The notes under the pieces are model-generated. The model saw nothing but the letters and a program-made list of their open reading frames with translations, searched no databases and had not been told where the DNA came from. This document shows positions 56,955 to 62,544 of a stretch of DNA of 64,000 bases, in pieces. Where the stretch lies: positions 62,001 to 126,000 of the forward strand of contig NW_013657673.1 of the NCBI RefSeq assembly GCF_000142905.1. The letters are read 5' to 3'. The stretch's first letter is position 1, and each line of letters begins with the position of its first letter. This DNA is from Thecamonas trahens ATCC 50062. Taxonomy: Eukaryota > Protista > Apusomonadida. The position numbers and the translations under genes are program-made.

Positions 56955-58895
56955 CTACGATGAGAGGCTGGAAGAGATGGCTACCTCGAGTGCGTCGATG
57001 AATGACAGGATGCGGGCGGCGTCGGCGTCGGAGACATCCCACTTGTCCCGTCCGCTCGCCTCAAACCACTCGCGAGGACTGGTTGTGGTCTCGCCACTTT
57101 GCTCTTGGGCAATGGCCGCCCAGTCAGCAACCATCTCGGCGAGATCAAGGTCGCTCATGCCTGCGAAACCTGCCGCGCCGTGGAACTCGACATGGTGGCG
57201 GTTGCAGGCCTTGTGATGGGTGATGGCGGCGGCAACAGCAGCGGCAACACCAGCAGGATACTCGAGCGGCTCATCGCGTGCCGCTGCTGCGTACCACGCC
57301 GTGAGCCAGACGTACGGAGTCCGCTCCGGCTCGTCCCACTTGGAGGCATCGTGCACATCAGCGCGGAGTCTGAGGTCTTCCGCCAGATCTGGGAGAGTTT
57401 GGGAGATGAGATCGAGGTTGCGAGCCACAGCAGCAATGTGGGCAACCGTCCGCTCCTCAAACGCCGCCTCCATCACCGGCGTAGGCGGAGCGCACTCTGG
57501 CACCTGGCACGGAACGCAAAGCGCGGCCACTTCTTCGTGGCCAGCCGCAGCCGCAGCTTGCCGTGGAGTGAGGCCATCACAGTCGAGCGCATCAAAGTCA
57601 ACACCCGGAACCCCAGCCAGCAGCCGCGCCGCGTCGGCCTGGCCGTACCGGGCTGCCTTGTGCAATGGCGTGTCGCCGTGGATGGTGACCGCATTGAGCG
57701 GGACGACGCCGGCAAGGTCGCCAGTGGTCAACATCTCGAGCACATCCATGACACCCGAAGCCGCAGCCATGTGCAGGATGGTCCAGCCCTCGGCATCGGT
57801 AGCCGCCGGCTCGGCCCCTTCCTGCTCGAGGAGCCACCGCAGCGTCGCTGTCTGCGTCCCGCGGACCGCAAAGTGGATCGGGAGCATGCCGTCCTCGTTG
57901 CCGATATGGAGCGCGCCAGGCGTGACCGCTATCAGCGCGTCAATCGCTGCCCCGGCCTCGGCTGCCATGTGCACCGCGTTGGTCTCGCGTGGGCCGGGAA
58001 TGAGCACATCGACCCCGTCCACCTCAGCCAGGACACGGACGCTGGCCGCGTTCCCAAGGCCAGCCGCGAGAAACATCGCTGTCCGCTGGCTGTTGTCGAC
58101 GACGTTGATCGTTGCCGGCGTCGCGAGCAGTGACACAACCTCAACGAGGTTGTTCGCGGCAGCAAGGTGCAGAGCGGTGATTCCTTTTGCATTGCTTGCT
58201 GCGGCATCGGCACCGGCGGCCAACAGCGCCGGCACCAGCCCGACATGTCCGCGCTCGACCGCCTCAAGGAGCGGCGTCTTGCCGCTCGCCCCGGGCAAGT
58301 TGACTGCTTCGGCCGCTGCGTCCAACAGGACTGATACAGTACGGGGCTCGCCGCGGATGCATGCGTACATCAGCGGAGTGCAGCCCGATGAGTCACACAC
58401 GGTGGCGGTGGCGGCGACGATGCCTTCGCTTGCGAGGACGCCGAGGGCCTCGACCGCGCCCTGGGCAGCGGCAGCATGTACCGCCGTCCACCCGGCGTCA
58501 TCAGCGGCCTCAGGCTCGGCGCGGTCGGTAGCTAGCAGGGCGACTACTGCACCATCCCTGTTGCGTGCCGCCGCGGCCATCAGCGGTGTCATGCCCTCAC
58601 GACCGCGGACAGCGGGATCGACGCGGGCGTCGGCGAGCAGCGGCCCGTACAGCGCCGGATCGCCGACATCCACCGCCAGCATGAGCGCAGTAAATCCCTT
58701 GGGTGTCACCACATTTGGATCGAGCTCTTCCAGCGCCAACAAGGCGGCGACAGCACCGGCGTTGCCCGTGACCACTGCCAGGGTCAGCGGTGTCAGGCCG
58801 CCGTCCCCAGCCTCGTTGAGCCCTTCGACGCCACCCGCCACCATCGCCGCAAGAGCTTCGCCGTCGTTAGCCCGAATGGCCTCAAGCAGTGCCAT
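56955..58895 (-). CDS. Ankyrin-repeat protein with C-terminal DUF5662-like HD-superfamily domain
   Basis: About 13 ANK repeats (G.TPL..A...G); C-terminal T..H...V, HDASK...E, AI.HH...NRHH.E.H, M...DLAEMVADWAA. Confidence 0.88.
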   Translation of the reverse strand: MALLEAIRANDGEALAAMVAGGVEGLNEAGDGGLTPLTLAVVTGNAGAVAALLALEELDPNVVTPKGFTALMLAVDVGDPALYGPLLADARVDPAVRGREGMTPLMAAAARNRDGAVVALLATDRAEPEAADDAGWTAVHAAAAQGAVEALGVLASEGIVAATATVCDSSGCTPLMYACIRGEPRTVSVLLDAAAEAVNLPGASGKTPLLEAVERGHVGLVPALLAAGADAAASNAKGITALHLAAANNLVEVVSLLATPATINVVDNSQRTAMFLAAGLGNAASVRVLAEVDGVDVLIPGPRETNAVHMAAEAGAAIDALIAVTPGALHIGNEDGMLPIHFAVRGTQTATLRWLLEQEGAEPAATDAEGWTILHMAAASGVMDVLEMLTTGDLAGVVPLNAVTIHGDTPLHKAARYGQADAARLLAGVPGVDFDALDCDGLTPRQAAAAAGHEEVAALCVPCQVPECAPPTPVMEAAFEERTVAHIAAVARNLDLISQTLPDLAEDLRLRADVHDASKWDEPERTPYVWLTAWYAAAARDEPLEYPAGVAAAVAAAITHHKACNRHHVEFHGAAGFAGMSDLDLAEMVADWAAIAQEQSGETTTSPREWFEASGRDKWDVSDADAARILSFIDALEVAISSSLSS

Positions 58896-59162
58896 ACCCC
58901 CTCACTAGTCACTCGTCGACCTGTATGTGAGCCAAGTGTGGGCGAGGACTCTCCCCGCTGTCCGCACTGCCAGCCATCTCTATGTCTGCCTCGCGTGACA
59001 GCGATAGCCCCCCAAAGGGCAAAGAACGATGGAAGGAGAGCATTCCTTCCATTCCTTCTCACCACCCTTCCCCATTCCCTCCCACCTCCCCAGCACACCA
59101 CTCCTCCCCTCCCCCCCCCCCCCCCTCCCCTCCCCCTCCTCCTCCTCCCCATCCACCTGATC

Positions 59163-61316
59163 ATGGCCGATGATACACACCGCCCACTCTCGTCGTCGTC
59201 GTCGTCGTCGTCGTCATCGTCGTCAGTGCTTTCGCCCTCGTCGTCGAGGCCCATGACGCCGCAGTCGAGGCCGATCTCGCCGCCGTCGAGGCCGATCTCG
59301 CCCAATGGCGATGCGCAGGACGGAATCAGGGTGCTGTGCCGGATTCGTCCGATGAACGATGACGAGCTGGCTATGGGTGCAGACGAGGCCATCGAGGTGA
59401 GCGGGAACACCGTGGCGCTGACGGTCACATCGTACACGGCCGACGAGACCGGGACGCTGCGGCGAAGCAGGGATCTTCGGCGCGATGGGCGAACGTATCC
59501 GTTCAAGTTCCACCACGTCTTCCGGCCGACCGCCACCCAGCACGATGTGTATGCGCTTGCTGGCGAGCCGCTCATTGACGACGTGCTGGAGGGCATCAAT
59601 GGCGCCATCATCGCGTACGGACAGACCGGCTCAGGCAAGACCCACACCATGTTTGGGCCCGATGGCGACGATCCGCGGGCGGCCTACGAGTCGCTTGATG
59701 AGTACCACAAGGGCATTGTGCCGCGGTTGATGGCGGATCTCTTCCGCAGAGTCGACCTCGCCAGCGACAGCTATTCCTTTGACGTCACAGCATCATACAT
59801 CGAGATCTACATGGAGGCGCTCTGCGACCTCCTCCATCCGGACACCGACGGCAAGCCGTGGGAGGGCGCGGCGAGCCGGCCGAAGCTCGAGATCCGGCAG
59901 ACATCCGAGAACGCGATCTGGATCAAGGGCGTAACCCAGGTCGAGGTTCGCTCTGCCGCCGATGTCTTTGCCCTTCTCCGAGACGGCAATCGGAACCGGC
60001 ATGTTGCGGCAACCAAGATGAATCGCACTTCGTCGCGCTCGCACGCCGTCTTTGTTCTCACCGTCCACAAATCTGAGGCTGTCTCGGGCGAGCACACCAT
60101 GGCTCAGCTTTATCTTGTCGATCTGGCCGGCTCGGAAAAGGTCTCCAAGGCCAAGACCGACGGCATGCGGCTGCAGGAGGCCAAGCGGATCAACTTTTCA
60201 CTCCACACCCTGGGCCGCGTCATCGATGCCCTCACCACCCACGCCCGCTCCAAGCGCTCGTCTCGATCCACCCGATCCTCGCGCCACATCCCGTATCGCG
60301 ACTCGCAGCTCACGCGGCTTCTCTCAAATTGCTTTGGCGGCAACGCGCGAACAAGCCTCATCGTCAACGTCTCGCCGTCGGATTGGAACTCGGTTGAGTC
60401 ACTCTCCACCCTCATGTTTGGTGCCCGGTCGTCGCTCATCAGCAACGCGCCAACCGCAAACAGATATCACACCGTCGAGGAGTTGTCTGCCCAGCTCAAG
60501 GCCGCCAAGACACTCATCGCAACGCTCACTGCCGAGAACGCGGCCCTCCACCATGCACTCGCCTCCACTTCGCTCGCCCCGCGACCCCTCACTGAAGCCA
60601 TCGAGCCCGCCCGGCACCACGCCTGCCCGCCCGTCAACTCGCCAGTCGCCAGCCCATCGTCGTCAGTTCCCAGTCATCACGTAGCGGTAGTCGTCGCCGG
60701 CTCGCGGCAGCTCTACTTTTCGCCAGAGCAGCGCCGGCGACAGGAGTTCTTTACCTTTCTCTGCCCGCTCACCAACCAGGTCATGACCGATCCGGTTGTC
60801 GCCGCCGATGGCATCTCGTACGACCGGCTCGCGCTCGGACGCTGGCTCGAGAGCCATACCACGTCGCCGGCCACCGGAAACGAGCTGCTGCACACCCACA
60901 TGCTGCCCAACTCCACGCTCGCCCGACTTATCAAACTCCGGTACCCGGGCACACTCGCCCCGGCCATCGACGCCATCAACTGGCTACCGGCCGAGCTCAT
61001 CGATGCCATCATGCGCTTTCTCGACCCGGCCTCACTCTGCGCCGCCGCCCGAGTCTCCCGCCGATGGTACCACATTTCATCGGCGCATCCAGTCTGGCGC
61101 GCACTCCTCGCGGCTGACCACGGCATCACCCGCGACGCCGAATACGTCTACCGCACCCGAGCCGGAGCCGCGGTCGCGCCGCGGTCACCGCCGCCGGCCG
61201 CCGGCATGCTCGCCAAGTGGCTGTACCACGACGCGCACGTCGACGCGCTCATCGCCGCCGGCCGGCGCGACCCGAGCACCCGCGCCCGCAACTGCGGTAT
61301 CATGCTCCGCCGCTGA
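59163..61316 (+). CDS. Kinesin motor - coiled coil - U-box - F-box fusion protein
   Basis: IRVLCRIRP, AYGQTGSGKTHTM, NRTSSRSH, LVDLAGSE, HIPYRDSQLTRLL, GGNART; U-box FLCPLTNQVMTDPVVAADGISYDR..L..WL....TSP.T...L....LPN..L; F-box LPAELIDAIMRFLDPASLCAAARVSRRW.......VW. Confidence 0.92.
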   Translation: MADDTHRPLSSSSSSSSSSSSVLSPSSSRPMTPQSRPISPPSRPISPNGDAQDGIRVLCRIRPMNDDELAMGADEAIEVSGNTVALTVTSYTADETGTLRRSRDLRRDGRTYPFKFHHVFRPTATQHDVYALAGEPLIDDVLEGINGAIIAYGQTGSGKTHTMFGPDGDDPRAAYESLDEYHKGIVPRLMADLFRRVDLASDSYSFDVTASYIEIYMEALCDLLHPDTDGKPWEGAASRPKLEIRQTSENAIWIKGVTQVEVRSAADVFALLRDGNRNRHVAATKMNRTSSRSHAVFVLTVHKSEAVSGEHTMAQLYLVDLAGSEKVSKAKTDGMRLQEAKRINFSLHTLGRVIDALTTHARSKRSSRSTRSSRHIPYRDSQLTRLLSNCFGGNARTSLIVNVSPSDWNSVESLSTLMFGARSSLISNAPTANRYHTVEELSAQLKAAKTLIATLTAENAALHHALASTSLAPRPLTEAIEPARHHACPPVNSPVASPSSSVPSHHVAVVVAGSRQLYFSPEQRRRQEFFTFLCPLTNQVMTDPVVAADGISYDRLALGRWLESHTTSPATGNELLHTHMLPNSTLARLIKLRYPGTLAPAIDAINWLPAELIDAIMRFLDPASLCAAARVSRRWYHISSAHPVWRALLAADHGITRDAEYVYRTRAGAAVAPRSPPPAAGMLAKWLYHDAHVDALIAAGRRDPSTRARNCGIMLRR

Positions 61317-61323
61317 ACTTCGC

Positions 61324-62253
61324 TCATTCACCGAGCAGCTCCACCAGCTGGCGCGCAAAGCCCGGATTCGGACGCGCAATCGGACGCGCTGCGCGCACCC
61401 GCGCAAGCGCTTTCGCGTATCCGCTCTCCATCTTGGACCGAACCAGAAACGCAATGAGGACCGACGACGAGCGCGAGATGCCCTGCGCGCAGTGGACGAG
61501 TGCTGGCTGGTCAGGCGAGGCTCGGGCCAGAAACTCGCATGCGGCGTCAAGTGCACCACCGGCATCCAGATCCTGGCCAACCTCGTCATCCAGCGGGAGG
61601 TGAAGGACTGTGATGCCCACAGCCGCAAGCGCAGCTACTGGCTTGCACTCCCGCGCAACGTTCAGAACAAACTTGATTCCGCACGCCTCGAGAATTTCCA
61701 CTCGCGACGCGACGTACTGCGACGAGAGGAAGAGACCAGGCGCAACGTGTGACGGGAAGGCCGGCATGACGGCCGCCACCGGCGACAACGCCGCCATAAA
61801 CGGATACGTCTCCAGCAGCTCAGCGGCAGCAGCGACGACTAACTTGGTCACGCTCTCGCGCAGCGCCCACTCGCGCCCGATGTACTCAGCAGCAGCGCCG
61901 GCCCATCGCACCGCCTCGTCGTCCTCGTCTGCTCCTGCCAGGGCTTCCGCCACTGCCAGAGCCTCGGCCGCCACCCCATCTAGCCGCGCCTCAAGCCCGG
62001 TCCGATCCCCGCCGCAGAGGACGACAACAAGGCCAGGCAGATCGGGCGTCGACGGTGGATACCACTCGGGATCATTCGCCCGGAGCTTGGCCGGCGGGAG
62101 CCACTCGGTGAAGACCACCCTCTCGGGCTCCTGCATCCACGCCTCGAACGAGTCCACTACCCGGGCGTCGACCACTAGCGCTCCGTTGTTGAGTGCGTTG
62201 TAGACCTCGCGCGGAGAGGTAACGGCAGGCACAGTCTCGTTTCCACTCGCCAT
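61324..62253 (-). CDS. Dual-specificity protein phosphatase with degenerate rhodanese-like N-terminus (MKP-like)
   Basis: PSHVAPGLFLS, GIKFVLNV, LPLDD, ALVHCAQGISRS, VR.ARPIARPNPGF..QL; N-terminal LVVDAR. Confidence 0.88.
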   Translation of the reverse strand: MASGNETVPAVTSPREVYNALNNGALVVDARVVDSFEAWMQEPERVVFTEWLPPAKLRANDPEWYPPSTPDLPGLVVVLCGGDRTGLEARLDGVAAEALAVAEALAGADEDDEAVRWAGAAAEYIGREWALRESVTKLVVAAAAELLETYPFMAALSPVAAVMPAFPSHVAPGLFLSSQYVASRVEILEACGIKFVLNVARECKPVAALAAVGITVLHLPLDDEVGQDLDAGGALDAACEFLARASPDQPALVHCAQGISRSSSVLIAFLVRSKMESGYAKALARVRAARPIARPNPGFARQLVELLGE

Positions 62254-62544
62254 CTCGACCGCCCAGTTGACCAAGCGGCGTGTGTCGCTCGTCGTGCCCG
62301 TCGGCCATGAGGTCAGCCAGCCAGCTGCACGTCGGCAAGTCAGAGTCGCACTAACAGTGGCGCCATCGTCCACATTGGCTGACGAGTCGCAGCAGGTCAA
62401 AACCGCGACCTCTTTTTGCGTACCACCATTGAATCGGGTCTTCCGCTGCCTGCCATCCCATGACTGGTGGACAGCACGACAACCAAGCCACCTCCCTCCA
62501 GGGCACGTACATCAGGCGAAACGTCTTTGTAGAAGTGATTTTGT

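Follow-up and report, generated by a model that had tools for sequence, protein, structure and literature searches.

A kinesin of Thecamonas trahens with a U-box and an F-box in its tail belongs to an unnamed protist family beside kinesin-1

Here we analyze a gene located at positions 59163-61316, plus strand, in a 64,000-nucleotide window of the Thecamonas trahens ATCC 50062 genome (contig NW_013657673.1, positions 62,001 to 126,000 of the forward strand; all coordinates below are those of this window, the whole stretch of DNA analyzed). It is a real, single-exon gene that encodes a kinesin-1-like motor followed by a U-box and F-box tail, and it represents an old, widespread, and unnamed family of protist kinesins that lies beside kinesin-1. 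Kinesins are defined by the cargo of their tails and ubiquitin ligases by the way they find their substrates; here, both are fused in one chain, and the retention of this fusion across many supergroups points to a genuine function under selection, one that is invisible in the standard model organisms. A first-pass annotation, made from the sequence without database searches, had proposed that the protein is a motorized ubiquitin ligase (E3), a mechanism that appears plausible from the sequence. The reading we favor, and consider somewhat better than even, is that of a plus-end-directed dimeric motor that holds a tethered U-box ligase and is tied to Skp1 by the F-box.

Relatives were collected by a word-indexed homologue search, with 120 matches listed, and the organisms that hold them were named through cluster look-ups and Pfam. 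A kinesin motor together with a U-box was found in 61 of the 120 matches listed, the closest of which, P0001, is a 54% identical protein of the same architecture from a marine metagenome. The holders include Nematostelium gracile (Amoebozoa), Mantamonas plastica (CRuMs), Gefionella okellyi (Malawimonadida), Acrasis kona and the diplonemid Namystynia karyoxenos (Discoba), Hemimastix kukwesjijk (Hemimastigophora), Apiculatamorpha spiralis and Amorphochlora amoebiformis (Rhizaria), and many dinoflagellates (Polarella, Effrenium, Symbiodinium, Amphidinium, Polykrikos, and Yihiella). All three domains are present in Nematostelium, Mantamonas, Gefionella, Apiculatamorpha, Acrasis, and uncultured marine organisms; Hemimastix and Namystynia have the motor and the U-box only; and in dinoflagellates and Amorphochlora, the F-box is degenerate. 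Many of the family sequences are complete open reading frames (ORFs) in transcriptome assemblies, so that in those species the fusion sits on one mRNA. Thus, the fusion described in the first-pass annotation stands, but the gene is not a singular one, a point that the annotation missed: the same domain order recurs in many eukaryotic supergroups, and the gene is one member of a clade that spans them.

In an alignment of 46 family members, Pfam detected the motor and the U-box (PF04564) in all 46; 19 members matched the F-box-like model and 13 matched the F-box model. The F-box block, the nearly invariant tryptophan W645 (numbering of the T. trahens protein), the W-x-x-L-L-x-x-D-F turn, the RxxY helix, and the C-terminal K-G-L-x-L-F align in nearly all members. 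The U-box is the constant element across the family. Further searches yielded little more: a homologue search limited to residues 500-717 retrieved only one protein, because it is word-indexed; a HMMER scan with the tail against 1.84 billion representatives gave 338 proteins at E-values up to 1e-10, mostly generic U-box proteins, and therefore does not size the family; and a protein-atlas look-up returned only low-score F-box and U-box clusters, adding nothing.

For phylogenetic analysis, motor domains were cut with the family hidden Markov model from all matches and from 29 kinesin loci of this genome; the sample was thus drawn by similarity to the query, with other kinesin families represented by the paralogues of this genome only. 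In a quick tree of 156 rows, all 69 U-box-bearing rows fell within one clade of 79 (support of 98 in the Shimodaira-Hasegawa-like approximate likelihood ratio test, SH-aLRT). In a careful IQ-TREE analysis (LG+C20+F+G4 by posterior mean site frequency, PMSF; 87 rows, 337 columns), the U-box clade comprised 39 tips with an ultrafast bootstrap of 100 and SH-aLRT of 99; a U-box is present in 33 of these, and in the remaining six the tail is gone or exchanged for another. With support of 90/91, the canonical kinesin-1 clade included fungal heavy chains, Dictyostelium kif3, the Andalucia heavy chain, and two T. trahens paralogues (L003 and L005), and the two clades joined at 100/99 to the exclusion of 21 other kinesins of this genome. 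The phylogeny suggested at first pass thus places the U-box kinesins in one clade next to kinesin-1, and this separate position indicates that, judged by its motor sequence, the protein is a member of a distinct group beside kinesin-1, which may be a subfamily of it or a separate family, rather than a canonical kinesin-1. A well-supported clade, unsampled by the 45-genome kinesin census of 2010, is thereby added to the kinesin-1 neighborhood.

In the full-text literature searched, which leaves most subscription journals outside its coverage, no paper was found to describe a kinesin that carries a U-box, whether or not an F-box accompanies it. The 2010 census names no such architecture (Wickstead; PMC2867816), and the accessible part of its supplementary tables holds no U-box entry, the only F-box entries there being N-terminal F-box models from Batrachochytrium and Monosiga (PMC2867816). 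Within these sources, the initial remark that the two modules are combined in no kinesin family described so far is borne out.

Some sequences related to the family deviate from the common architecture. Five marine metagenome proteins inside the U-box clade (P0052, P0059, P0060, P0064, and P0074) are kinesins of 850-1070 residues without a U-box. Their tails end in a glycine run and then Cys-Cys, as in G-G-G-C-C-A-R-P-T, an ending that resembles a lipidation signal; in this subgroup, the ligase tail appears, from the sequence, to have been exchanged for a membrane anchor. Four short metagenomic ORFs (P0174, P0198, P0261, and P0190) contain the U-box, the F-box, and the C-terminal G-[LIV]-x-L without a motor. 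These looked like stand-alone U-box/F-box cassettes. One of them, at locus L043 (90-926 of a 988-base contig), was rejected as such: its frame is open upstream, and it is therefore a fragment. Another, at locus L042 (268-894 of a 958-base contig), has stops upstream and possibly represents a motor-less version or contains an intron.

The frame of the T. trahens gene is uninterrupted on the plus strand from 58938 to 61316, and its first ATG, at 59163, opens a 717-amino-acid product. As noted at first pass, it is intronless: the 2.15 kb frame is free of stops, and no credible splice joint was seen inside it among the RNA-library contigs aligned. Two apparent joints both came from poorly matching contigs, and the only one inside the frame, a 58-base skip at 60053-60112, derived from a single contig of low depth. 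The RNA evidence consists of short metatranscriptome contigs and, because such libraries may contain DNA, is weak support. Contigs at 60416-60566, 60435-60672, 60874-61033, 61033-61287, and 61057-61538 match without a mismatch, and one at 59321-59726 matches with a single mismatch; the segment 59088-59229, marked as a repeat, was skipped in this alignment. The 60874-61033 contig bridges the U-box and the F-box, and the 61057-61538 contig crosses the kinesin stop into the convergent neighbor. Of the span from the motor to the F-box that the first-pass annotation had proposed to check in RNA, the link between the U-box and the F-box was thus found, but that between the motor and the U-box was not: 60672-60874 is not bridged by any single contig. 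This gap would suit an assembly or annotation artefact in which a kinesin gene was joined to a separate U-box/F-box gene, an explanation that we consider next to impossible. It was dropped because the architecture is conserved in independent sequences, with the identical domain order in the 54% identical marine metagenome relative and in at least six cultured protists, where it is seen in complete ORFs of transcripts; furthermore, the frame is continuous, and the motor tree and the tail architecture are concordant. Recurrence in independent transcriptomes and genomes thus speaks against both misassembly and separate genes. Public sequencing runs that contain this stretch are marine or estuarine.

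The features of the gene, from the N-terminus to the C-terminus, are as follows.

59163-61316, plus strand: whole coding sequence, 717 amino acids and the stop codon, no intron (ORF list, Pfam architecture, RNA-library contigs)
59163-59312, plus strand: low-complexity N-terminus, residues 1-50, with Ser/Thr-Pro sites after a poly-Ser stretch (translation)
59340-60434, plus strand: kinesin motor, residues 60-424 (PF00225, E-value 1.7e-101, model positions 1-325 of 327)
60240-60290, plus strand: loop L12 insert of about 17 residues, 360-376, basic and rich in Ser/Arg, located where the K-loop lies (sequence)
60435-60572, plus strand: neck linker, residues 425-436, and neck coiled coil, residues 438-470 (alignment, AlphaFold model)
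60573-60722, plus strand: disordered Pro/Ser-rich tether, residues 471-520 (predicted local distance difference test score, pLDDT, below 50 in the AlphaFold model)
60723-60947, plus strand: lead-in helix and U-box, residues 521-595 (PF04564, 48.2 bits; phmmer; model superposition)
60972-61121, plus strand: F-box and helical extension, residues 604-653, with an LPxE start, a hydrophobic core, and W645 (Pfam, Foldseek)
61122-61295, plus strand: C-terminal region, residues 654-711, with the conserved RxxY helix (family alignment, model)
61296-61307, plus strand: C-terminal peptide G-I-M-L, family consensus K-G-L-x-L-F (family alignment)

All three domain assignments of the first-pass annotation, PF00225, PF04564, and the F-box, score above the Pfam curated cut-offs, and the positions it had given for the motor (~59323-60455), the canonical U-box (~60750-60935), and the F-box (~60975-61110) agree with ours to within about 20 bases. 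The motor is intact, with the P-loop GQTGSGKT at residue 153 (59619-59642), switch I SSRSH at residue 290 (60030-60044), and switch II DLAGSE at residue 320 (60120-60137), and none of these positions varies among the 46 aligned family members. Its best relatives among solved structures are kinesin-1 heavy chains (E-value 1e-71). The neck linker, located after helix alpha-6, is of the kinesin-1 type, with Asn428 and Asn433 nearly invariant in the 46-member alignment. The short coiled coil described at first pass corresponds to a confidently modeled helix at residues 438-470 (pLDDT 92-97; model residues 9-41).

The Pfam U-box match covers residues 532-590 (60756-60932) with 48.2 bits against a cut-off of 21.4. 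In a phmmer search, the domain matched the U-boxes of OsCIE1/PUB12 and AtPUB14 (E-value 1e-9), with 38% identity to plant PUB U-boxes. The lead-in helix and the U-box are modeled with pLDDT of 91-97, and a Foldseek search with the model of residues 430-717 ranked first the OsCIE1 U-box solved with its ubiquitin-conjugating enzyme (E2; 7xed_C), with an E-value of 9e-7, a root-mean-square deviation of 0.7 A over 65 columns, and a template modeling (TM) score of 0.80, followed by GmPUB13, AtPUB14, CHIP, E4B, and LubX. Across the family, C534, P544, D549, G550, Y553, S568, and P569 do not vary, and conservation is also seen at D-P-V, D-G-x-x-Y-x-R, and S-P. The U-box is of the zinc-free kind, with C534 as the single cysteine within the Pfam match.

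A linker of 15 residues separates the U-box from the F-box. The F-box-like model PF12937 matches residues 608-648 (60984-61106) with 39.3 bits against a cut-off of 24.3, and the F-box model PF00646 reaches 32.6 bits (cut-off 20.5). In the model of residues 598-717, the mean pLDDT is 79.5 and the F-box helices lie at 85-92; about 20 of the first 23 Foldseek matches listed for it are structures of F-box proteins in complex with Skp1, among them Fbw7 (2ovq, TMq 0.51), FBXO4, FBXL5, Cdc4, Skp2, FBXO3, and FBXO31, with deviations of 1.4-1.9 A over about 40 columns; the SCF (Skp1-cullin-F-box)-ARIH1 complex 7b5l also appears among the F-box fold matches. The F-box fold is thus supported, with the profile scores carrying the assignment and the structural comparison adding qualitative backing only. 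Pfam detected no WD40, leucine-rich repeat (LRR), Kelch, or other substrate-binding domain after the F-box, where only about 70 residues are left. The C-terminal region is modeled as a hairpin and a helix (pLDDT 75-86). A G-[LIVM]-x-[LIVMFY] peptide occurs within the last 25 residues in 36 of the 46 members, against a chance estimate of 5-6, and its Leu715 is nearly invariant.

The T. trahens assembly (28.7 Mb, 131 contigs) contains about 50 kinesin loci, most of them intronless, and the gene described here is the only kinesin with a U-box among them. A single Skp1 is encoded as well, along with at least four cullins, and the F-box-like loci number at least 80, so that partners for an SCF role exist.

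What we infer for this protein, namely its motility, direction, dimerization, E2 and Skp1 binding, ligase activity, and substrates, can be combined into the following mechanism. The motor would hydrolyze ATP and walk to microtubule plus ends, as expected from the complete set of catalytic motifs and the kinesin-1-type neck linker. The 33-residue neck coil would pair two chains, and the flexible tether of about 50 residues would hold a compact tail. There, the U-box, as the constant catalytic element, would recruit ubiquitin-charged E2, and the F-box, about 15 residues downstream of it, would dock on Skp1 and possibly thereby on Cul1-Rbx1, being followed by the extension of about 70 residues that ends in the conserved hydrophobic-basic peptide. 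The ligase would be positioned or transported along microtubules by its own motor, which would act as the targeting device. In Fbw7 and beta-TrCP, the D (dimerization) domain lies directly upstream of the F-box; the U-box occupies this very position, so that, by analogy, a dimeric SCF-like assembly would be geometrically natural. The microtubule ends, basal body, and flagellar roots, which the first-pass annotation had proposed as possible sites of action, are unsupported, and the family holders include amoeboid lineages; a flagellar or basal-body role, for which no evidence was found, was dropped. The protein provides a test case for the delivery of a ligase by its own motor, for the cooperation of a U-box with an SCF arm in cis, and for ubiquitin-dependent control of microtubules or their cargo in early eukaryotes. 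A far-reaching version, which we regard as doubtful, is a motor-borne double E3 dating back to the last eukaryotic common ancestor, in which the U-box and the Skp1-Cul1-Rbx1 recruited by the F-box would act jointly on proteins encountered along microtubules, one of the two priming chains and the other extending them, with the motor as the targeting device and with subsequent loss in the animal, fungal, and plant lines.

Several points weigh against this interpretation. The ligase function of the protein is predicted from sequence and models, and for the F-box the structural comparison gives no more than qualitative support, with a best Foldseek E-value of 0.11. The F-box is missing in P0004 and Hemimastix in the family alignment, and in the dinoflagellate subgroup of this sample it lacks the LP start and the C-R-W signature, so that Skp1 docking may not be the core function of the family. 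Other kinesin families are sampled in the tree only through the paralogues of this genome, and among the metatranscriptome contigs of this organism none was found that connects motor and U-box.

The variation of the F-box bears on an alternative in which only the U-box is catalytic and the F-box serves solely as a Skp1 adaptor without an SCF complex, with Skp1 acting as a light-chain-like partner or cargo link. Yeast has such non-SCF Skp1 complexes, namely Rcy1, RAVE, and CBF3. The F-box of the T. trahens protein is followed by no substrate-binding domain, the U-box is universal in the family while the F-box signatures vary, and the genome encodes a single Skp1, all of which fits this alternative; however, the F-box here is fully canonical, several cullins are encoded in the genome, and nothing speaks against Cul1 recruitment, so we deem it unlikely. 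A dimerization role of the tail goes further: the U-box and the F-box, having lost ligase activity, would be structural or binding modules that serve dimerization at the position of the D domain of Fbw7 or beta-TrCP, and the protein would be an ordinary transport or organizing kinesin. U-boxes often dimerize, the one in question lies directly upstream of the F-box, where D domains are found, and the F-boxes of dinoflagellates are degenerate. Nevertheless, the residues of the E2-binding loops (C-P at 534-535, D-P-V, and S-P at 568-569) are invariant across supergroups, and the fold closely matches E2-bound U-boxes, which makes this explanation very improbable.

The conserved C-terminus suggests yet another possibility, that the tail governs the fate of the motor itself, through autoubiquitination or SCF-mediated turnover and without external substrates, while the C-terminal peptide autoinhibits the heads from a position like that of the IAK motif. 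F-box proteins are commonly unstable through autoubiquitination; the short peptide is conserved in 36 of the 46 members; and R-I-A-K-P-L-R-G-G or a close variant lies near the C-terminus in 11 of the 27 canonical kinesin-1 tails checked (RIAKPLRGGG in its longer form). The peptide does not, however, align with IAK, and a sequence search found no IAK-type motif [ILV]-A-[KR]-P in this protein. Self-regulation as the sole role of the tail thus seems quite improbable, and we retain the motor with a tethered U-box ligase, tied to Skp1, as the favored reading.

The motor of the T. trahens protein is 45-48% identical to canonical kinesin-1 heavy chains, compared with 51-58% for the two canonical kinesin-1-type paralogues in this genome, L003 (G000 C18:65127-66071) and L005 (C18:225041-226000), which lie about 160 kb apart on the same contig and group together within the kinesin-1 clade (SH-aLRT 98 in the quick tree). 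A recent preprint reports that a truncated T. trahens kinesin-1 homologue, denoted ThTr, was the most divergent of twelve, glided with a Vmax of 0.60 um/s and half-maximal ATP of 81 uM, and formed unusual microtubule networks in vitro that were nematic, then rotating, then contracting (10.1101/2025.09.10.674348). Given the lower identity of the motor described here, ThTr may be this gene. A basic L12 insert of similar kind is present in the closest relative, P0001, whereas L12 is short in the rest of the family. In the T. trahens protein, the insert might strengthen binding to microtubules or be phosphorylated, and, if ThTr is indeed this gene, it would be a candidate cause of the unusual network behavior.

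Upstream of the kinesin gene, 268 bases away and on the opposite strand, is a divergent gene (56955-58895, minus strand) for an ankyrin-repeat protein that ends in DUF5662 (PF18907, 118 bits). Downstream, a convergent dual-specificity phosphatase gene occupies 61324-62400 on the minus strand. The kinesin stop codon (61314-61316) is separated by seven bases from that of the phosphatase, so that the 3' untranslated regions of the two genes must overlap.

Among the known systems, kinesin-1 (KIF5) shares with the T. trahens protein the N-terminal motor, the heads that are its best structure matches, the neck-linker asparagines, and the neck coil. The stalk, however, is about 33 residues long instead of hundreds, a single helix before the disordered tether; the light-chain-binding region and the IAK motif are absent; and the tail consists of the U-box and the F-box. 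CHIP/STUB1 and the plant PUB proteins have the same canonical zinc-free U-box (38% identity to OsCIE1/PUB12 and a 0.7 A fold match), and CHIP also has a dimerizing coiled coil upstream of the U-box, which is predicted here; in those proteins, targeting is through TPR (CHIP) or ARM repeats (PUBs), whereas here the motor would serve as the targeting module, and an F-box follows the U-box.

The F-box proteins of SCF ligases (the FBXO class, Fbw7, beta-TrCP, and Cdc4) have the same canonical F-box with the LPxE start, and the model aligns best with the F-box and linker of Fbw7; unlike Fbw7 and beta-TrCP, the kinesin has a U-box at the place of the D domain and, in the roughly 70 residues that follow the F-box, no WD40 or LRR receptor. 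The SCF-ARIH1 complex (PDB 7b5l) is comparable in that two E2/E3 catalytic routes would meet at one substrate receptor, but the second E3 of that complex is an RBR protein in its own right, recruited to the neddylated cullin, whereas here the second E3 module would be fused in cis to the F-box protein; that the U-box and an SCF arm might cooperate as in SCF-ARIH1 is pure speculation by analogy. The concept of a ubiquitin ligase localized on microtubules is shared with MID1/TRIM18 and TRIM46, which bind microtubules passively through COS-box regions and have RING domains, whereas the kinesin described here combines an ATP-driven motor with a U-box and an F-box.

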